Assembly: GCF_963921235.1 (NCBI RefSeq)
Contig: NC_086120.1
Span: 27,528,001-27,592,000, forward strand
Length of the DNA stretch: 64,000 bases
DNA from: Mobula hypostoma
Lineage: Eukaryota
Direction of reading: 5' to 3'
The notes under the pieces were generated by a model. It was not told the origin of the DNA. It saw nothing but the letters and a program-made list of their open reading frames with translations, and did not search any database. The position numbers and the translations under genes were made by a program. Of the stretch, positions 30,310 to 64,000 are shown in pieces (positions within the stretch are counted from its first letter, which is position 1; the number at the start of each line of letters is the position of its first letter).

Positions 30310-31891
30310 CTATCTCTGTGCTGAAAGCTGTGGAAAGACAACAGGAGCACAGGCAATCCCTGCTAAAGATTCGGGGAAATGCAGGTCCCTCTCCCACTCG
30401 TCTGTCCCAATGTTATAAACCTGCACAACACTTGTCACGTTGTTTAAGTGCCAATTATAACCTCCCACCACATAGATCTTTCTATGTAATACACAGCAAC
30501 CTGCTTCAGACTGGCCTGTCCTCATTGGACTGACACTGGTCCACTGGTCATTCTCAGGGATATAATACTCAACAGCCAGGACATCAAAGCAGTGGTCAAC
30601 ATGGTCCATCCGGCCACCCAAAGCATAGATCCTCCCATTTGCCCCGACCATTGAGTGAAGCACCCGCGGCTCATTCATTGAAGCCTTTTGTTCCCAGAGA
30701 TCTGTTTCAGGATTATAACAGTGAAGAGATTTCTTATCTTCAATGGTGATACCATACCCTCCAGAGATGTAGAGCTTGCCCCCACTGGATGTCCCTGCAT
30801 GTCCCCATGTCCGCCGTTTCAAGCAACATACATTGGTCCATTCATTGCGTCGTGGGGAATAACACTCTACTGTGGAGAGGCTCCCAGAAAGGTTACGCCC
30901 CCCAGTGGCGAACAGCATCCCTTGCAGCACATCCAGCTGGAACTGAATGCGAGCCTCCTGCATGGCACAAATGCGCAGCCAATGACTGAGATGCGGGTCA
31001 TAGCGGAAACAACAGCTGACTGCCCCTTCGCCGCTGCGGTACTGCAAGTGCTGACCTCCCACCACGTACACAAAATTGTCCAAGACAGCTACACAGGCGT
31101 GGCTGCAGCCTATCTCCATCTCGGGCCACTCCGAGAACTGACGGGCATTCCCATCTGCAAGAACAAAGACTTTGCGGCTGACTGTCCTGTTGTTGTCAGT
31201 GTAGGGAGTGCCACCGAAGGCAACTAGGGAGAGGGTATCTGAGCGGATCATAGTTCGGCTGCACTGCATCTCATGCTGTCGAAATGGCAGAATTTGGTAG
31301 TTAAAGGCTTCCAACAAGTACTGACGACACATGGGATCGTCCAGCATTAAGCTTTGTGTCTGGACGCTATCCACTAGCTCAGTGGACTTCATCAAAGGGA
31401 AGCGGATGTGGCAGAGGACCAGGCTGGCATTAGCTAGTCGCGTCTCATCATACTGCAACCACCTGATGGCAGCACGGAATAGGTCAACTTCACTGCAGTT
31501 CTTCAGCTTGTTGCTTTTCAGGAAGAAGACAAGGCGCTCGAGGGGAAGGTGCAGGAAATCCTCCTCCTCTGCAATTTGTAAGAAATGAGCAAAGGTAAAG
31601 GCATCCACTGACTCTTTCAGGGAGGTGAGGCTGAAAGTGGTGGCCATCTGGCCAATGTTGAGGCAAGTCTCCACGCTCATGGCCGACTTTAGGAACTGCT
31701 CACACAATTCAACCACAGGCGTGATCTGCAGGAAGACAGCAGCTCCCAGCACGTCTTGTACGCAGTCAAGGTCCAATGTCACCTCAGCACTGTATGCAAA
31801 ATCAATGATGTGTCTCAGACCCCTGGCAGACACCCCTTTCAACTCAATGACATCTTGGCCCATTTCCCGCATTCCCCCTGTGAACATCGCC
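30310..31891 (-). CDS. KLHL26: KLHL26 exon 3 (BTB/BACK/Kelch repeats to stop); spliced CDS 1812 nt = 603 aa
   Basis: CCCAG acceptor; uninterrupted ORF AMFTGGMRE...ERDLHFPESLAGIACAPV, highly similar to KLHL26; adjacent to CRTC1 as in human. Confidence 0.97.
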
Positions 31892-33406
31892 CTGGGAAGA
31901 AACAGATCCAAAAATGAACCAAACACATAGCAGATGGATGATCATGACATTAACACTTTACTCAATGTAGAGTTTGCTGTGAATAAATCAACTGCTTCAT
32001 TTTTATATAACAATTCAATTCAGAACATCACAAATCTCTCCCAAGTCTTTCCTGCTCCAAGAACAATCAGTTTCTCAAATCCCTCCATTTAACTGTGGAA
32101 ACTCATCCCTAGAACCATCCTAGTGAACCTCTTAAACCTGAAAGTTGATTTTCTCCGGCTGTAGGGGTAACCAGCAATTTGTAAGGTTTTGGTTTGACTT
32201 CACTCTTTTTCTACTTAAACCTATTTATGAAGCCTAGCATCCCTTCTTAACTTCCCTTATCAGCTAGCATTTCCACCTTTAACAATGACCAAAAATGTCT
32301 CTTTCCTCTGCTTCATGTTGTCTCAGCCTATCTAAATTATTTTCCTGAAGTGCAGAATTTCACAGTTTCTGATATTAAAATGTACCTTCAGTCCATTTTA
32401 TTAGTCCTTTATTTTTAGTTCATTCACAGGATGTGGATGTCATGGGCAATTCTAACACTTATCGTCTATCCCTGATCTGAGGCTGTTAAGGTCACACACA
32501 TTAGTCAGTCTGATGTCCCAATCAAGCATCCTGGGTATGGATGGTAAATTTTCTTCCTTGATGGTGGGTTTTTATAATAATCTTGTAGTTTTCTCATTAC
32601 TGAGATGAGCTTTCTTTTTACTTAATTAATTAAACTTAAAGCTCCCAACTCAATGATGGGATTTAAACTTGTATCTCTGAAACTATGGTTCAAGAACACT
32701 GGCTGTTAAAGCATTAGCAACCACTGTTGTGTTGAAATGTGCCTGTATCCCATTTTAGCACTTTGCCATCAATTAACAAATTATACTCTCTATCTTCAAG
32801 CCAAAGCAATTTAAACATAAAAATTTAAGACCAATCACAGGTGATTAAAATTTCCTACCATTCACCATCTCCTTTCCGACAGCCTCTACCACTGCCCCCC
32901 GATATACGTGTTTCTATTTTTGAAGTAAGTTGCCTCTGTTGTACTTATTCAAATGCCTCTGAAAAATCAATATATAATAGGCATCTATTACATAACCTTC
33001 ATCATTCTCTTCTATTGGTTTAAAGAACATAATTTGTGCTCAAATTATTTATGCTCAATTCTCAAAAAATTGATTTAATCTTTGAGGAATTTTATTTTAA
33101 TTATTTCATGTTGGATCGACATTGCTTTTCATTTTAATGCCATCCATCATTAGTTTATTTTTATTCCTCCTACACTTTCCCACCCGCACCAGACAGCACG
33201 AAGGCTTAATGCCAATTGCTGGGAAGGAAAAGGAGCTGAACCAGACACATTCCTTCCATGGCCTCAGCTTAAGTATTTGACCCAGAAGCTGGGTCAGCAC
33301 TAAATTTCCTCTGGAAATATTTCTTATAATAATCAATACCTCTATTTCTTGCTTCAACTCATATTCTTCTGTTGAAACATATCTGTAGAACTCTCTTCCA
33401 CAGCAT

Positions 33407-39901: not shown

Positions 39902-40540
39902 NNNNNNNNNNNNNNNNNNNNNNNNNNNNNNNNNNNNNNNNNNNNNNNNNNNNNNNNNNNNNNNNNNNNNNNNNNNNNNNNNNNNNNNNNNNNNNNNNNN
40001 NNNNNNNNNNNNNNNNNNNNNNNNNNNNNNNNNNNNNNNNNNNNNNNNNNNNNNNNNNNNNNNNNNNNNNNNNNNNNNNNNNNNNNNNNNNNNNNNNNNN
40101 NNNNNNNNNNNNNNNNNNNNNNNNNNNNNNNNNNNNNNNNNNNNNNNNNNNNNNNNNNNNNNNNNNNNNNNNNNNNNNNNNNNNNNNNNNNNNNNNNNNN
40201 NNNNNNNNNNNNNNNNNNNNNNNNNNNNNNNNNNNNNNNNNNNNNNNNNNNNNNNNNNNNNNNNNNNNNNNNNNNNNNNNNNNNNNNNNNNNNNNNNNNN
40301 NNNNNNNNNNNNNNNNNNNNNNNNNNNNNNNNNNNNNNNNNNNNNNNNNNNNNNNNNNNNNNNNNNNNNNNNNNNNNNNNNNNNNNNNNNNNNNNNNNNN
40401 NNNNNNNNNNNNNNNNNNNNNNNNNNNNNNNNNNNNNNNNNNNNNNNNNNNNNNNNNNNNNNNNNNNNNNNNNNNNNNNNNNNNNNNNNNNNNNNNNNNN
40501 NNNNNNNNNNNNNNNNNNNNNNNNNNNNNNNNNNNNNNNN
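39902..40540. other. Assembly gap (639 N) flanked by G-rich low-complexity repeats
   Basis: Run of N; G/A-rich tracts at about 39820-39901 and 40541-40750. Confidence 0.99.
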
Positions 40541-40995
40541 GGGGCAGGAGGGGGGAGAGGGGAGGGGGAGGGGGAGAAGGGGGGAGGGGAGGGGAAGGGG
40601 GAGAAGGGGGGAGGGGAGGGGGAGAAGGGGGGAGGGGAGGGGGAGCAGGGGGGAGGGGAGGGGGCGGGGGAGAAGGGGGAGGGGAGGGGGAGAAGGGGGA
40701 GGGGAGGGGGAGGGGGAGAAGGGGGAGGGGAGGGGGAGAAGGGGGAGGGGTGGCGTGATGGGAAGAGGTGTAGGTTGGGATGGGGAGATGGGCTTGGGAT
40801 GGCCGGTTAGGTGAGGTGAACGGGCCACCGGCGCTGTTGTGTGAGGCGGCACAGGTGAGGAGGGAATCGGCACCGCTTCTCCCTTTGCTCGGGCCGCCGT
40901 CTAGATATCGGCCTCACGACGCTCCGCAATTTGTCCGCAAACCGCTGATTGCTCCTGGGGCCTGTGACGGGCTGAAGCCTCAGGCTCGCCTTTAC

Positions 40996-41163: not shown

Positions 41164-41296
41164 ATGGGGCAGGGCCGAGCGGGGAGAATGGGGCGGGGCC
41201 TAGCGGGGAGAATGGGGCGGGGCCGAGCGGAGAGAATGAGGCGGGGCCTAGCGGAGGGAATGGGGCGGGGCCGAGCGGGGAGAATGGGGGCGGGGC
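41164..41296. repeat. 24-bp minisatellite (about 5.5 copies), most units carrying a GC box
   Basis: Unit ATGGGGCGGGGCC(G/T)AGCGGGGAGA repeated in tandem. Confidence 0.9.
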
Positions 41297-49989: not shown

Positions 49990-50727
49990 GCTGGATTGCT
50001 GAGTTCAAGAGCCGTGAGGTAACATTACAGCTATGTAAGACCTCAGTTAGACCTCACTTGGAGTACTGTGTTCAGTTCTGGTCGCCTCACCACAGGAAGG
50101 ATGTTAATATTATTGAGAGAGTGCAGAGGAGATTCACAAGGATGTTGCCTGGACTGGAGAGCATGCCTTATGAGAATAGGTTGAGTGAACTTGGCCTTTT
50201 CTCCTTGGAGCGACGGAGGATGAGAGGTGACCTGGAAGAGGTGTATAAGATGATGAGAGGCATTGATCATGTGGATAGCCAGAGGCCTTTTCCCAGGGCT
50301 AAAATGGCTAATACGAGGGGGCACAGTTTTAAGGTGCTTGGAAGTAGGGTCGGGGGGATGTCGGGGTAAGTTTTTCACACAGAGAGGTGGGTGTGAGGAA
50401 TGCACTGCTGGCGGCAGTGGTAGAGGCAGATACAACAGGGTCTTTTTAAGAGACTCTTAGATAGGTACATGGAGCTTAGAAAGATAGAGGGCTATGCGGT
50501 AGGGAAATTCTAGGCAGCTTCTAGAGTAGGTTACAAGATCGGCACAACATTGTGGGCCGAAGGGCCTGTAATGTGCTGCAGGTTTCTATGTTTCTATTAA
50601 GTTTTAGATAGGTACATGGAGCTTATTATGGTAGGGAAATTCTAGGCAGCTTCTAGAGTAGGTCACATGGTCAGCACAACATTGTGGGCCGAGGGGTCTG
50701 TAATGTGCTGTAGATTTCTATGTCTCT
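49990..50727 (+). mobile_element. CR1 LINE 3' end with duplicated 3' UTR
   Basis: EYCVQFWSPHHRKD...ERVQRRFTRMLPGL; 3' UTR repeated at about 50457-50595 and 50604-50725. Confidence 0.9.
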
Positions 50728-54692: not shown

Positions 54693-54700
54693 TTATAGAC

Positions 54701-54898
54701 TGTTGTGTATGTGGCCTGTTTACACAACAATGTTATTAATAAAAATGCTGGAGATGGGAGCTAAGTTTCATGGTTCTTTACTGGCAGAATCCAAACTCGG
54801 CACACACATACAGATCAATACGTGCCTAATAGCGCATTCAACAACGTGTTACTAAAGCATAAATTAGTCCCTTATTATACTGTAGACTATACAGTACA
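54701..54898 (-). repeat. 3' LTR (198 bp)
   Basis: Direct repeat of 58090-58285; preceded on the minus strand by the PPT AAAAGGGGAGGAG (54911-54899). Confidence 0.95.
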
Positions 54899-55120
54899 CT
54901 CCTCCCCTTTTATTTTATCAACTGTTTTTTTTTACTGGGGCACTATGCTAAACAAATATGTTTACCCTTAACATGCAAATGCCTACCATTGGTTTACTTA
55001 GTAACTTAATAATATCAAATTATAACAAGCTTTTTTTTTACTTTTGGTCTAAGACCCATTTATAACTCAAGTCTCTGCGGGGGAGGAGTCTTCTCTGCCT
55101 CTCCGGGTAACGTCTATCAA

Positions 55121-55391
55121 AAGGAAAGAAAAGGAAAGGTACGTCGCATCCGGAGTTTCTCTGTTTAGCAGACGATTTCCCTCCACAGCTCTCTGACGTG
55201 GTGGGGAACTGCGTACGAGGCAAGTTACAGCAGTGGTTTGCCATTGCCTTCTGTTGGGTGAGTTTCCAAAGAGATCACCAGCTCATAACCCAGTACTGAT
55301 GGAAAGTGTTCAGGGGAGCCGGCTGGATTTGAACTTGGGACCTTTCGTCCCAAAGTCCGACGCTGATGCCACTACGCCACCAGCCGAGTCT
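55121..55391 (-). mobile_element. tRNA-derived SINE with RTE-like 3' tail inserted in the LTR element
   Basis: A box TGGCGTAGTGG, B box GTTCAAATCC, GAAGGCAATGGCAAACCACT motif, (CCTTT)n tail; near-identical 8-bp flanks TTGACAGA/TTGATAGA. Confidence 0.8.
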
Positions 55392-55503
55392 TCTGTCAAT
55401 AAGCTTGTTTGTTTTAATACAGATTTCCATATAAAAGTCATGAAAAGTTGACCTCTGAGCATATGGAGTTAAGAAGATGTGCGCCTCCAACTTGCTAAGA
55501 GTT

Positions 55504-56437
55504 CTAGGCAGCAGATAGCCTCTGTATAATGAAGACTCCTCTGTGCAGTTGTCCTAGATATATACGCACCTTTGTGCTATCACTAGTCTTCCTTATCCAT
55601 ATCTCATTTGTTCCAATGGAGCTAATTACACAGCCAATCTTCGTATTCTCCTTAGATTCCAAATAGATAGTCTGACCTTTATGATACCACCTCTTATCGT
55701 TATGTAATTTTTCATCTTCTATTCATGCTTCATATCTTTGTGCTGGTGATTCAGCAGGAATGCTGGGAAGATGCTCAGGAGAAGATGGAGATGCAGGTTT
55801 TTTCGGAGATTTAAGCTTATTGAGAGTTCGCAGATCTTCCATTATCTGTTCATCTGTGAACAAGTAATGTAACTGCGTACGTGCAGATTTTTGTCTTTTG
55901 TCTGTAATTGGATCAGGGTCATTAGGTCTTCTCCTTAGTTTCCTAGTCACTATTGGCTTTACCTCCATAGAATCTCCTGTGAGTTCCATTGTTAGCCTCT
56001 CATTCTCAATCATCTTTTTCTTTTCTTTTAACTCAATCTTTTTATCTTCAAATTCCTTCACTGCTGCGTTCTTCTCTTTAATATAATTCCTTTCCACTTG
56101 TTCTGTCTCCAGTTGCAGAAAAAGCTCTGCATTTCATATTCTTTCCTAGTATTGTTGATCTAGTTTCTTCATCCTTTTCTGATACTCCTGCAAAGTGCCT
56201 TCCTGTAACTGCTGTAGCTGTCTTTTGAGAGATGTCAATTTCTCCTGGTACATCTGCTCTTTTACTTCCAGGTAGTCTTCATCATCTTGCTTATTGGCAA
56301 TATCTGTCTCCCTTGCATCCTCTCTATCTTCATCTGAGTCGCGGCTATGGATACTGCTTGTCCTCATCGTCGACACTGTCTAGCTCCTCCTCGTCATTGT
56401 AATAGTTGACAGTGGGTGAGAGGAGAGCTGTAGACGT
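55504..56437 (-). pseudogene. SUDS3: Intronless processed copy of SUDS3 (SIN3/HDAC subunit SDS3) inside the LTR element
   Basis: [38 protein letters not shown]...[11 protein letters not shown]...KRWYHK...[20 protein letters not shown]; start codon mutated to ACG, one frameshift near 56356, stops at 56146, 56134 and 55723, about 24-nt deletion; no introns. Confidence 0.95.
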
Positions 56438-56451
56438 CTTCCCTGCCGAGC

Positions 56452-57725
56452 TAGTGCCTTGATGGTGTGCCAATCCAACTGGATTTTCCTGAGCCATTCA
56501 CATCCCAGCAATGGTGGTCCTCCATTTTTCAGTACATAGAGGTTCAGCTGCTGTGTTTTGTCTCATAGGTCACTGTCACTTTAATTTTACCTTTCGGACA
56601 CACTTTCTGTCCTATGTTAAGTCTTTAGCAGTAGTTTAGTTCATTTCAGAGGTATGTAAAACAGACGTTTGTAGTCGTGTACAGAGATCACTGTTAAAGC
56701 TGAGCCTGTGTCCAACTCCATTTTCAGTCTCATGCCTGCCACTTGTGGAGTGATCCTCGTTACTCTTTGATCATCTGTCTCTTTCACACTGTGAAGCTGC
56801 AGACAAGACAATTCACTTTCGTCTGAGTTGTTTTCATCGGAACTGCTTTCTTCCATTTTGTGTACATTGTAATGTTTTCCTTTCTGGGGCTTCTTGTTTC
56901 TCTGTATTTTGTCCTTTTTCTGTTGTTTACTAGCTTTGCATACTCTGCTAGTGTGGCCCTGTTTGCCACAGTTTCTGCATTCTTTGTCTTTAAACCAACA
57001 GTCATCAGGGTCACTTGACATGTTCCCACAACAGTAACATTGTTTACTAGCTTTGGATACTCTGGCAATGTGGCCCTGTTTGCGACAGTTTCTGCATTCT
57101 TTGCCTTTAAAACGACAGTCATCAGGGTCATTTGACATGTTCCCACAACGGTAACATTTCTTTCCTTCATTTCTGTTCAGTGACATTTTATTTGTAGCAT
57201 ATTCCAGAGATTTTTGTTGTATCTCTGAAGCACCCTGTGCTGCTGTTTCCAATGATATTGCAATGTTCTGCGCCTTCTCTAATGTGAGGTCTTTTTTACC
57301 CAGGGGCTTCTTCTGTGTGGTTTCACAGTGCATGCCACACACTAACCTGTCTCTCAATGCGTCCGATAGACCAGCTCCAAATTGACAATGTTCTGATAAT
57401 TTGCGCAATTCAGCACAATATTCAGAAATACTTTCATTTTTGCTCTGAACCTGTTTGTGAAATTTAAATCAATGACTAATGGTCTGGGGTTTAAATGACG
57501 TTGGAGAGCGTCTACTATTTGCTTGAACATTTTGTCAGCTGGCTTTTCTGGGGTTAACAAGCTCCGTAGCAGCCCGTATGTTTTTGTTCCCATAATACAT
57601 AAGATGCTGGCTTTCTTTTCATCATTGACACCGTTAGCCTCACAATATAACTTCACTCTCTCAATGTAAATTGCCCAGTCTTCAATGCCACTATCAAATG
57701 CTGTAATGGTTCCAATCATCGCCAT
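56452..57725 (-). pseudogene. gag-protease of the LTR element (frameshifted, with stops)
   Basis: MAMIGTITAFDSGIEDWAIYIERVKLYCEANG (gag N-terminus); LRDRLVCG; CX2CX4HX4C-type knuckles; MELDTGSA protease; ends GPPLLGCEWLRKIQLDWHTIKAL. Confidence 0.92.
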
Positions 57726-57860
57726 CTTTGTTATGTTAATTTAGCCCTGTTTTCCCCTTGTTTTCTTTTTGACTCACGTGTCCTTTTTGCTAGCGCAACG
57801 AATGCACTCTGTCTAGATGTGTGTTTGACGCTCCGCAGGCAGACCCTCAACCCCTGGGGA

Positions 57861-58022
57861 TCAGCGCCGGGGTGGTCTTGCCTGGATGTGCTGCGGCTCC
57901 TATTGTGTCTCTTGGTCTCCTGACATTCCCAACCCCGGCTGTGCTCCTGCTTCCTTTCGGACTCGCGGCCTCGCTCTGCCTCCTTCTCCAGCTCCTTGGC
58001 TCGTTCCTTGCGCTCTTCCTCC
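57861..58022 (-). pseudogene. ACIN1: Captured fragment resembling the C-terminal RS/RE-rich end of ACIN1 (Acinus)
   Basis: EEERKERAKELEKEAERGRESERKQEHSRG...ETKRHNRSRSTS...RR* versus recalled ACIN1 EEEQKEREKEAERE...KRREHSRE...DTKRHSRSRSRST...RR*; CAG/TGG/TGT codons fit CpG decay of Arg codons; more GC-rich than the rest of the element. Confidence 0.68.
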
Positions 58023-58073
58023 AAGTGTCATTATCAGCTAAAACCCGGTGTTCCGATAAGATGTAGGTTCATT

Positions 58074-58086
58074 AACCTCGTCACCA
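58074..58086 (-). other. Primer-binding site, probably tRNA-Ser(GCU)
   Basis: TGGTGACGAGGTT 3 nt from the LTR; the complement of the tRNA-Ser(GCU) 3' end is TGGCGACGAGGAT. Confidence 0.7.
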
Positions 58087-58089
58087 ATT

Positions 58090-58285
58090 TGTTGTGTATG
58101 TGGCCTGTTTACACAACAATGCTATTAATAAAAACGCTGGAGACGGGAGCTAAATTTCATGGTTCTTTACTGGCAGAATCCGAACTCAGCACACACACGT
58201 AAAGATCAATACGTGCCTAATAGCGCAATGACGTGTTACTAAAGCATAAAGTAGTCCCTTATTATACTGTAGGCTATACGGTACA
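58090..58285 (-). repeat. 5' LTR (196 bp)
   Basis: About 93% identical to 54701-54898; TG...CA termini; followed on the minus strand by the PBS. Confidence 0.95.
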
Positions 58286-60980
58286 TAGACCAATAGCATT
58301 AACCTCACATTTATAGAAAGCCATGGAAAAGATGATTAATAAGAGATTGACATATTACGTTGAAACAAGATGAAGTATTTTTAAACATCAGATTGTATTT
58401 AGGAGAGGAGGTCTGACATCTAGAACATGAGGTGAGGAGGGCTCAATTGAAGAAAGAAAGCATAGTAGCAGTCTTTTCGGATGTAGAGAAAGCAAACGAC
58501 ATGATGTGGAAGGAAGGTCTGATCATCAAATTACATAAATTCAGAATTGGAGGTCAACTGCTAAATTGGATAAAAGATTTTTTAGTTGGTTGATCTATCA
58601 TGGTGCAAGTAGGGAAAACTTGGTCAAGTAAGCAAATTGTGGAAGATGGAACCCCTCAGGGAAGTGTTGTTCGTCCATTATTATTTGCTATAATGATAAA
58701 TTGAGAGAGAGAGAGAGAGAGAAGTATTGGAGTTTCATTATTTGCAGATGATAGAGCCATGTGGAAAAGGGTTGGGAATGTGGAATTTACAGTATCATAC
58801 TGAAACTTCAAGAGGCAATAGTTAAAGTGGAAGATGAGGCAATGAAAAGGGGATTCAGACTTGCAGCAATGAAATCCAAAATAATTTTTTTCACTAAGAA
58901 GAGGAGAGAGCAACAATTAAAAACTAAAACTTTATATCATAGACTTAAAAAGTGTGGATACCTTTAAATTTTTAAGAATTTGGTTTGATAAATGACTCAT
59001 GTGGTCAACAAATATTAAGCAAATAATAACCAAAAGTAAAATGTGCTAAATGTTCTGAGGTATTTAATAGGAAAGGTATGGGGAGCTGATAGGAAATCCT
59101 TGAAGGTAATATATATAGGATTAATAAGATCAATACTGGACTATGATAGTATGGTATATTGATCAGCATCACACTTTATGTTCAGGAAACTGGATACAAT
59201 TCAAAGTCGTGGATGAAGGTTAATCAGTGGAGCAATAAGAACACCAGTGGTGACAATGCAGGTGGAGTTGGGAGAAACACCTCTGGAATTGAGAAGATCA
59301 CAGCTTGCGTTAACATATTGGCTAAACCTACAAGGGTCTGGAGAAAATCATCCAAGTAAACAGCTTTAGATCCATGCTGGAAAAAGGAAAGAAAGAAAAT
59401 CAGAAGTTTTGCATGAACTGTTGAAGGAAAAGCAGAAAGGACAGGAATTCATAATAAGGCAGTGATTGATACGCTGCTTTTTCCTGAGCTGCCTCCATTG
59501 CTGTGTGAAGCACCAGAGGTGGATCTTAAATTATTCGAAAGGAGACAGAAAACTAGAGAAGTGATTTAAAATCAAGATATAGTTGAATTTTATATGAATA
59601 ATAATTATAGATATTTACAAATGCTTCAGGTAGTGCCTGATTTTAACATTAAAAAGCAGGTGAGAATGCATGATGATTTCTCAGTGTATACAGGTGGAAT
59701 GACAGCTGGACTGTTCACTTTGCAGTGGGTAGAGGGTGTGAAACTTATAAAAGTTGTAATATTGTCTGATTCAAGCACAGCAATCGGGAGTCTAAAAGAT
59801 TTACATTCTGATGTGTGAGATAATACAAACCTTATTTAGACTCAAAATGATACAGCTCTGTTTATGTTTTATACGGATTCCATTACGTATTGGTATTAGA
59901 GGGAAAGAGCGAGCAGGCAAATTAGCAAAGGAGGCAACGAGACAAACAGAAGTGGACATTTAAATAGAGTAAAGGAGAAATGAAAAACATTATTAAAGGT
60001 AAAATCAAAAACGTGGAGAAAATAATGGGATGGTGAGAGAACAAGAAGACATCTTTATAGTATCCAGAAAGTCGGATAGTCGAGGAACGCAGGAAGGAGG
60101 TTATAAAATCAAGATTGAAGTTTGGGCACCCAGGATTAAATAGTACATTGTTTTTAATGAAGAAACATAATAATGAGAGGTGCGAATACTGTAATCAGCC
60201 AGAAACGGTCAAGCATGTACCGGTGAGGTGTTCAAGATATAATGAAGAGAGTGGATGGGTGATTTAAAGTTATCATGGAATTTAACATTAACATTGGTTT
60301 GCAGAGGGATCACAGGATTAGTGCTTTAAATGTATAGTGTAGTTTCTAAAAATACAGGACTTCTTTTTTAAATATAGAATTTGATCCAAATATGTAAGGT
60401 TTAGATATCCTGACCCACACTCCAGTTCAGAAGATGGCAGTAATGCACCTTAAAGCTGTTGGCAAGCAGCCATAAAACCTCGGAAGTAGTAAAACAACAC
60501 TGAGCACACGAATCTCCCAGCTCCGTGTTTTTATTCCAATTAGTTTTATGTTTTGGAGTTTAACAACATAAGAAGTGGCAACGAAGAAGTTTTATGTGAA
60601 CCTGAGGTGAGTACCCCCCAGCAAGAAAAAATCTGCAGATGCTGGAAATCTGGCAGCATCTATGGAAAAAAAGTCAGAAAATGCTGGAAGAATTCAGCAG
60701 GCCAGGCAGCAACTATGGAAAAAAGTACAGTCGACGTTTCGGGCTGAGGGTCCCTCCAGCATTTTGTGGGTGTTGCGTGTCTACTCATCTGTTGAAGTGC
60801 AGCAAGATGTTTGGGTTAAAAAAAAGAACAGTGAGTCATTTGAGATTTTTAAAAAGGCAGAGAATGGATGAATTCATGGGTTCATAATCTTTCTCTCTCT
60901 CTCTCTCTCTATCTCTCTCATATATATACATACATATACACACACACCTTATATATTAAATATGCACGCACATGTATATA

Positions 60981-61321: not shown

Positions 61322-62540
61322 CAGTGCTTATAAAAAGTATTCACCCCACTCCCCTGAAAGTTTATATGTTTTATGGTTTTACAACATTAAATGACGGTGG
61401 ATTTAATTTGGCTTTTTTTTTAACACTGATCACCGGAAAATACTCTTTCATGCAAAAGTCAAAAAAGATCTCTACAAAGTGATCTAAATTAGTTACAATT
61501 ATAAAACACGAAATAATTGATTGCATGAGTATTCACTCCCTTCAAGTTAGTATTTAGTAGATGCACCTTTGGCAGCAATTGCAGCTTTGAGTCTGTGTGG
61601 ATAGGTCTCTATCAGCTTTGCACATCTGGACACTGCAATTTTTCCCCATTCTTCTTTACTAAACTGCTCAAGCTCTGTCAGATTGAATGGGGATCCATGA
61701 GTGACCAGCCCTTTTCTTGTCCAACCACAAATTCTCAATTGGATTGAGGTCTGGACTTTGACTTGACCACTCCAGGACATTAACTGTGTTATTTTTAAGC
61801 CATTCCTGTGTAGCTTTGGCTTCTTGCTTGAGGTCATTGTCTTGTTGGAAAACAATTCTTCTCCTAAGTCGCAGATCTCTTGCAGACTGCGTCAGGTTTT
61901 CCTCCAGGATTTCCATGTATTTTGCTGCATTCATTTTACCCTCTACCTTGTGTGCTGCAGTGAAGCATCCCCATAGCATGATGCAGCCACCACCATGCTT
62001 CATGGTAGGGATGGTGTGCTTTTGATGTGCGGTGTTTGGCTTCCCAAACATAGTGTTAGTCTGATGGCCAAAAAGCTCAATTTTGGTTTCACCAGACCAT
62101 AGAGTCATCTTCCAGCTGAATTCAGAGTCTCCCACATGCATTCTGGCAAAGTCTAGCTGCGATTTCATGTGAGTTTTTTCCAACAGTAGCTTTCTCTTTG
62201 CCACTCTCCCATCTCAGCCAATGAAGCTTGTAACTCTTCCAGAGTTGTCAAAGGTCTCTTGGTGGCCTCCCTCACCCATTCCCTTCTTACACGGTCACTC
62301 AGTTTTTGAGGACGGCCTGCTCTAACAGTACTGTACTCCAAGGGATATTTGGTGATTTGAAAATGTTCTTGTATCCATCTCCTGATTTGTGCTTTTCAAT
62401 AACATTTTCACCTTCTCACAGAGTTGCTTGGAGTCTTCATGGTGTAGTTTTAGCCAAAATATTGACTCATCAGCAGCTGGACCTTCCAGATACAGGTATA
62501 TTTCTTACTACAATCAATTGAAAGACTGCATAATGTGATC
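61322..62540 (-). mobile_element. Tc1 transposon of a different family, one end truncated
   Basis: TA-CAGTGCTTATAAAAAGTATTCACCCC TIR; KHGGGCIMLWGCF, FQQDND, SQSPDLNPIENLW. Confidence 0.9.
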
Positions 62541-62664: not shown

Positions 62665-64000
62665 AGAACATAGAACATAGAATAGTACAGTACAATACAG
62701 GCCCTTCAGCCCACAATGTTGTGCTGACCCTCATACCCTGCCTCCCATATAAGCCCCCACCTTAAATTCCTCCATATACCTGTCTAGTAGTCTCTTAAAC
62801 TTCACTAGTGTATCTGCCTCCACCACTGACTCAGGCAGTGCATTCCACGCACCAACCACTCTCTGTGTAAAAAACCTTCCTCTAATATCCCCCTTGAACT
62901 TCCCACCCCTTACCTTAAAGCCGTCCTCTTGTATTGAGCAGTGGTGCCCTGGGGAAGAGGCGCTGGCTATCCACTCTATCTATTCCTCTTATTATCGTGT
63001 ACACCTCTATCATGTCTCCTCTCATCCTCCTTCTCTCCAAAGAGTAAAGTCCTAGCTCCCTTAATCTCTGATCATAATGCATACTTTTTAAACCAGGCAG
63101 CATCCTGGTAAATCTCCTCTGTACCCTTTCCAATGCTTCCACATCCTTCCTATAGTGAGGTGACCAGAACTGGACACAGCACTCCAAGTGTGGCCTAACC
63201 AGAGTTTTATAGAGCTGCATCATTACATCGCAGCTCTTAAACTCTATCCCTCGACTTATGAAAGCTAACACCCCATTAGCTTTCTTAACTACCCTATCCA
63301 CCTGTGAGGCAACTTTCAGGGATCTATGGACATGTACCCCGATATCCCTCTGCTCCTCCACACTACCAAGTATTCTGCCATTTACTTTGTACTCTGCCTT
63401 GGAGTTTGTCCTTCCGAAGTGTACCACCTCACACTTCTCCAGGTTGAACTCCATCTGCCACTTCTCAGCCCACTTCTACATCCTATCAATGTCTCTCTGC
63501 AATCTTTGACAATCCTCTATACTACCTACAACACCACCAACCCTTGTGTCGTCTGCAAACTTGCCAACCCACCCTTCTACCCCCACATCCAGGTCGTTAA
63601 TAAAAATCACGAAAAATAGAGGTCCCAGAACAGATCCTTGTGGGACACCACTAGCCACAATCCTCCAATCTGAATGTACTCCCTCTGCCTTCTGCAGGCA
63701 AGCCAATTCTGAATCCACCTGGCCAAGCTTCCCTGGATCCCATGCCTTCTGACTTTCTGAATAAGCCTACCTTGTGGAACCTTGTCAAATGCCTTACTAA
63801 AATCCATATAGATCACGTCTACTGCACTACCCTCATCTATATACCTGGTCACTTCCTCAAAGAACTCTATCAGGCTTGTTAGACACAATCTGCCCTTCAC
63901 AAAGCCATGCTGGCTGTCCCTGATCAGACCATGATTCTCTAAATGCCTATAGATCCTATCTCTAAGAATCTTTTCCAACAGCTTTCCCACCACAGATGTA
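62665..64000 (-). mobile_element. CR1 LINE 3' half, relatively young, continues past the window end
   Basis: QHGFVKGR, YMDFSKAFDKV, SGVPQGSVLGP, KFADDT, CVQFWSPHYRKD; (TTCTATG)n tail. Confidence 0.95.

Follow-up and report, generated by a model that had tools for sequence, protein, structure and literature searches.

A GC-rich block in the over-long leader of a SUDS3-carrying LTR element from Mobula hypostoma: a possible second host-derived passenger

That LTR retroelements can capture host genes is well established for plants (Bs1) and for acute retroviruses. In acutely transforming retroviruses it is seen as gag-onc genomes, in which pol and env are replaced by a host cDNA. To our knowledge, host-gene capture has rarely been described for vertebrate germline Ty3/Gypsy elements. 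The maize LTR retrotransposon Bs1 is credited with having transduced segments of host genes on three separate occasions, according to the account given in PMC13317346 (Jin & Bennetzen 1994; Elrouby & Bureau 2001, 2010). LTR elements are documented to obtain foreign sequence when reverse transcription switches template to unrelated, co-packaged RNA (PMC13317346), and the long Veju TRIMs and BARE-2 are products of abnormal template switching (PMC13317346).

We analysed a 64-kb stretch of the M. hypostoma genome, referred to below as the window. A complete LTR-bounded unit of 3.6 kb was found in it (58285..54701); it lies on the minus strand, as do all of the features of the element given below. 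The 5′ LTR (58090..58285, 196 nt) starts with TG and ends with CA, and is 91% identical to the 3′ LTR (54701..54898, 198 nt). With its LTRs 9% apart, the element is old. A target-site duplication, GTCTA, could be read directly beside the 5′ LTR (58286..58290), with the same five bases beside the 3′ LTR (54696..54700). A PBS-like 12-mer, TGGTGACGAGGT, which starts with TGG and is conserved in the relatives described below, was located 3 nt past the 5′ LTR (58075..58086). A polypurine tract, AAAAGGGGAGGAG, also found by direct reading, adjoins the 3′ LTR (54899..54911). Paired LTRs, TG..CA ends, a target-site duplication, a PBS and a PPT, as expected of a Ty3/Gypsy-type LTR element, were thus all present. 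ARAGORN detected no tRNA gene in the 64-kb window.

Relatives of the element were obtained via gag homologues. L001 to L004 were taken from three NCBI assemblies and L005 to L011 from Logan runs, and the closest of the gag relatives had 61-70% protein identity. Nucleotide homology to L001-L011, at about 70%, extended from 57730 to 56459 and then ended. This homology corresponds to a broken remnant of gag and the start of the protease (56459..57725), which needed two frames to match the proteins of the relatives and contained 1-2 in-frame stops. The translation of the gag ORF included one intact C-X2-C-X4-H-X4-C motif and a D-T-G-S motif, and the Pfam match to zf-CCHC (E = 0.0014, 19.1 bits) was under the cut-off of 20.8. 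A tandem duplication of 117 nt was detected within gag (56923-57158, 2.0 copies, 91% alike), in which the zinc-knuckle segment was doubled in frame. In L004, gag is followed by RVT_1, RT_RNaseH and Integrase_H2C2 with rve, between LTRs of its own. In the window element, where homology to the relatives ends at 56459, pol with its RT, RNase H and integrase order is absent. Since pol follows gag in L004 and is missing here, the domain content indicates that the window copy is a non-autonomous derivative of such a Ty3/Gypsy-type family.

The relatives also shared the region around the PBS. The final 11 bases of the 5′ LTR formed the LTR end in L001, L003 and L004 as well. The PBS 12-mer was kept as TGGCGACGAGGT in L001 and L004, 1-4 nt past the LTR, and occurred in L003 and L006 with one or two bases changed. 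An LTR end, the PBS 12-mer and a purine-rich leader of about 150 nt were common to L001 (6833-7001), L003 (6870-7022), L004 (6836-7001) and L006 (190-354). L003 also possessed a partial tandem duplication of the LTR, just upstream of the conserved leader region.

In the place of pol, the window element holds the coding sequence of SUDS3 (SDS3), almost whole, running to the stop, intronless and in sense orientation (56434..55504). A capture of SUDS3 had been claimed by the sequence-only reading of this DNA, and it was borne out by searches made with the cargo. Pfam Sds3 matched it with E = 1.5e-6, and the solved SDS3 fragments 4ZQA and 2N2H gave near-identical PDB matches (E = 2e-10, 3e-7 and 9e-4). 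A protein search with the cargo recovered hundreds of SDS3 homologues. Its closest relatives were three short “SDS3-like” RefSeq proteins of rays, namely XP_062914480.1 from M. hypostoma (89% identity), XP_059812296.1 from Hypanus sabinus (86% identity) and XP_062911214.1, also from M. hypostoma (73% identity). The gene models of these three proteins are single-exon and lie within introns of other genes. One frameshift and about three stops interrupt the cargo itself. A sequence that is host-derived, intronless, in sense and between LTRs is what a host-gene transduction would leave, and by this sequence evidence the element carries a host cDNA of SUDS3, a result that we consider solid.

The cargo and the three ray proteins have in common a short form that lacks 8 residues. 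These residues were present in 34 out of 34 other SDS3 sequences covering the region. The shared short form suggests a single capture, or the capture of a single isoform, which was later multiplied. This fits a recent preprint, which places SUDS3 among the five genes most often retrocopied in cartilaginous fishes (bioRxiv 10.64898/2026.06.26.734816) and makes no mention of ACIN1. The excess of SUDS3 retrocopies in these fishes may represent one captured cDNA that was amplified by an LTR vehicle.

Between the SUDS3 stop and the PPT is a segment (54912..55503) in which direct reading suggested a possible SUDS3 3′ UTR, a tRNA-like segment and A-runs. The tRNA-like (SINE-like) segment was located at about 55310-55385, and neither ARAGORN nor Rfam made a call on it. 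A nested SINE, a further passenger (the third) or a stretch of the SUDS3 3′ UTR could each account for it. The A-runs were found downstream of the SUDS3 stop, near 55031-55040 and 54927-54935.

The element is situated among other repeats, at 58432-60300 and 50058-50369 on the plus strand and at 62915-63993 and 61547-62341 on the minus strand. These neighbours included fragments of non-LTR reverse transcriptases on both sides and a remnant of a Tc1/mariner-type transposase (DDE_3). Further away, a single ORF of 538 codons (30310-31926, minus strand) contained BTB, BACK and Kelch repeat domains, the BTB domain having a KLHL33-like model as its best match. This ORF is probably an exon of a KLHL33-like host gene. 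An assembly gap of 639 N was present at 39902-40540. It was followed by G-rich tandem arrays with strong GC skew at 40551-40750 and 41164-41296, composed of 21/27-nt and 24-nt units.

The 5′ leader of the element, from the PBS 12-mer to the gag ATG, is 349 nt long (57726..58074). It includes a GC-rich and purine-rich block with an open, charged reading (57861..58022), which is positioned downstream of the PBS-like 12-mer (58086..58075) and upstream of the gag ATG (57725). The block has a GC content of 0.62, a purine content of 0.70 and an E/K/R/D share of 0.55 in one frame. A GC-rich, charged reading between the PBS and the gag ATG had been proposed from the letters, and was reproduced at the same position by translating the minus strand of 58024..57860, which gave LEEERKERAKELEKEAERGRESERKQEHSRGWECQETKRHNRSRSTSRQDHPGAD. 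The reading belongs to an ORF of 97 codons (58024..57731). A stop following a frameshift at the end of the block had been proposed as well, and a second frame was indeed closed by a stop near the 3′ end of the block. The LTR, the proximal leader and gag had a GC content of 0.40. In the block it was 0.62, and it returned to 0.38-0.43 between the block and gag. In 60-nt windows the GC-rich zone reached from about 58025 to about 57810, or about 215 nt.

The block is unusual in its GC content and in having one frame with an E/K/R/D share of 0.55, and the leader that contains it is unusual in length. The three-base periodicity of the charged frame was reached by 87 out of 2000 dinucleotide shuffles (p ~0.04), and is therefore a marginal signal. 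Stops are scarce in each of the three frames of the block, which are nearly open throughout. This evidence argues only weakly that the block is more than chance. No function can be argued for it in this decayed copy, in which the untranslated leader carries it as a passenger.

Several other identities for the block were tried and rejected. It is not a simple tandem repeat, as just one 12-nt unit was found, at one end, in 2.3 copies. It is not a local copy of another sequence either, since no second copy of it occurs elsewhere in the 64-kb window. No signature of a duplication or a repeat was seen at its edges. A structured RNA element was rejected because folding was no better than in shuffled sequences (z = -0.58 and 0.11) and because Rfam made no call; the value of -0.58 refers to the predicted folding of the leader (57726..58074). 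The block is also separate from the SUDS3 cargo, which is bounded by 56434 and 55504.

A putative likeness of the charged reading to the C-terminus of ACIN1 (apoptotic chromatin condensation inducer 1), in the order of the motifs near the stop, makes this protein a candidate donor. ACIN1 had also been proposed in the sequence-only reading, which noted that both putative donors have links to SIN3; this may be coincidence. A donor was sought with several searches. A phmmer search with the block protein against 1.84 billion representatives gave one match, and no ACIN1 or other host protein. The single match, an artefact of a translated tandem repeat, missed the charged part and aligned with residues 51-79. 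Among 5.8 billion proteins, a word-indexed search, which covers only proteins of 54-171 residues, gave three candidates, none with E <= 10. Pfam had no match to the leader ORF. Searching PDB with the whole ORF gave only chance matches to thioredoxin reductase (E ~0.4-0.9), and two sub-pieces matched nothing there. The tail of ACIN1 is presumably missing from its PDB entries. Metagenome contigs, scanned with the back-translated block protein, gave nothing.

ACIN1 was thus not returned by the protein, family or structure-sequence searches made with the block's own protein, all of which had low power. To be listed by phmmer, a match needs about 35 bits (estimated from 53.9 bits at E = 1.9e-9), and a decayed, R/E/S-rich match of 25-50 residues may miss this value after the composition correction of HMMER. 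These negative results are weak, as the query is short, of low complexity and decayed and about 35 bits are needed for listing. We consider a host origin of the block an even bet. If the block is host-derived, the candidate ACIN1 is slightly more likely than not to be the donor.

The leaders of the relatives bear directly on how the block is to be explained. Past the 12-mer, the leader has 349 nt in the window. Four relatives, which come from four or more assemblies or runs, have 132-148 nt there, and this is a comparison between distant lineages with gag about 70% identical. The excess of 201-217 nt equals the GC-rich zone, and the leader looks as though it was enlarged by a foreign-looking block. 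No part of the window leader beyond the PBS aligned with the leaders of the relatives above shuffled controls, and an insertion boundary therefore cannot be drawn. Among themselves, the relatives' leaders are well conserved and have a GC content of 0.39-0.42. In all four of them purines make up 0.66-0.71 of the sequence and E, K, R and D make up 31-40% of the residues in all three frames, with open runs of 26-41 codons. As these leaders are purine-rich and charged in every frame, an open, charged reading alone is no sign of a captured coding sequence.

Our preferred explanation, to which we assign a probability of roughly 0.45, is that the block is a foreign, RNA-derived piece that was template-switched into the leader. 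Its probable source is a host mRNA that encodes a nuclear protein rich in arginine, glutamate and serine, and more precisely the 3′ end of that mRNA. A foreign insert is plausible on several grounds. The leader exceeds those of the relatives by the length of the GC-rich zone, and the GC content rises from 0.40 to 0.62 and falls back across the block. The same element demonstrably holds a sense host cDNA. The charged frame is open in the sense strand of the element and has a modest codon periodicity, in a block that is not a tandem repeat. The folding results also give nothing that points to a structured native leader signal. Several findings argue against an insert. None of the searches returned a homologue of the block, the periodicity is weak, the leaders compared in length belong to distant relatives and do not align with this one past the PBS, and the relatives' leaders are purine-rich and charged in all frames as well. 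The missing homologue and the composition of the relatives' leaders also favour the view that the block could be a GC-enriched, lineage-specific version of the native purine-rich leader. The lineage would then have lengthened its own leader, the charged ORF and its stop would be by-products of composition, and no host gene would be involved. The nearly open state of all three frames and the marginal periodicity speak for a native leader too. Such a leader is harder to reconcile with a GC content of 0.62, when the relatives' leaders have 0.39-0.42 and the rest of the window leader has 0.40, with a length more than twice that of the relatives and with folding results that give no basis for a leader structure under selection. 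A native origin is quite possible, if short of likely.

The donor and the timing of a foreign insert allow two further explanations. The block could be derived from an R/E/S-rich host gene other than ACIN1, for instance one whose product acts in splicing or chromatin and has an RS/RE tail, since its composition is common to many nuclear proteins and ACIN1 was singled out by no search. We consider this unlikely, as the searches named no other protein either and as the putative likeness to ACIN1 lies in a specific order of motifs near the stop. Less probable still is an event private to this copy, in which the leader received filler DNA or part of some other repeat once the element was already in place. 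The comparison does rest on one copy, and the element is an old one with other rearrangements, including the 117-nt duplication and possibly the SINE-like insert. The edges of the block, clean of any duplication or repeat signature, and its single occurrence in the 64-kb window count against a late insertion, and so does the fact that the block has the sense and the purine bias of the element.

If the preferred explanation of a template-switched insert is correct, a cellular mRNA would have been co-packaged with the RNA of the non-autonomous Ty3/Gypsy-type LTR element. Reverse transcriptase would then have switched template to the co-packaged mRNA and back again, and the leader would have gained about 160-215 nt that are foreign to it. 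This would be an accident of the same class as the one that replaced pol with the SUDS3 cDNA. A second host fragment in the leader would mean repeated capture at the RNA level in one lineage, and would provide a concrete case for the origin of chimeras. The ACIN1 part adds little to this as it stands. A more ambitious proposal is that a pol-less family derived from Ty3/Gypsy in rays took up two host mRNAs, with SUDS3 replacing pol and the tail of ACIN1 entering the leader, and then spread across Myliobatiformes as a vertebrate counterpart of Bs1. We find this proposal doubtful. If true, it would attribute the excess of SUDS3 “retrocopies” in cartilaginous fishes to an LTR vehicle and not to LINEs.

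Among known systems, maize Bs1 is the closest. Both elements are non-autonomous, have kept gag-side sequence and carry host coding segments in sense between their LTRs, and for both more than one host donor has been proposed. Unlike the plant element Bs1, which contains partial gene segments, the element described here comes from a cartilaginous fish, has one cargo that is almost complete (SUDS3) and has its second, putative cargo in the 5′ leader. For a leader insert, the nearest parallel is provided by the Veju TRIMs and BARE-2, in which reverse transcription brought foreign sequence into a non-coding region of the LTR element. These differ in being plant elements with inserts of unknown or retroelement origin, whereas the leader block is a putative host mRNA tail in a vertebrate element.

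Like the gag-onc retroviruses, the element is built as a leader, a gag remnant and an intronless host cDNA between two LTRs. As in those genomes, helper copies would be needed for reverse transcription and integration, and the presumed route is co-packaging followed by non-homologous template switching. Unlike them, the window element is of the germline Ty3/Gypsy type, is not infectious and has no env, and its decayed copy shows no sign of a selected fusion frame between gag and the cargo. Pack-MULEs and Helitrons similarly pick up and multiply fragments of host genes, but they capture DNA and keep introns. The SUDS3 cargo is intronless, which indicates an RNA-mediated capture. Intronless copies of SUDS3 scattered in ray genomes, within introns, resemble processed pseudogenes made by LINEs. 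In contrast to LINE-mediated retrocopies, the SUDS3 copy of the window is located inside an LTR element with a target duplication of its own. Together with the 8-residue short form private to the ray copies, this location suggests that the copies go back to one capture, spread by an LTR vehicle, and not to numerous independent LINE events.
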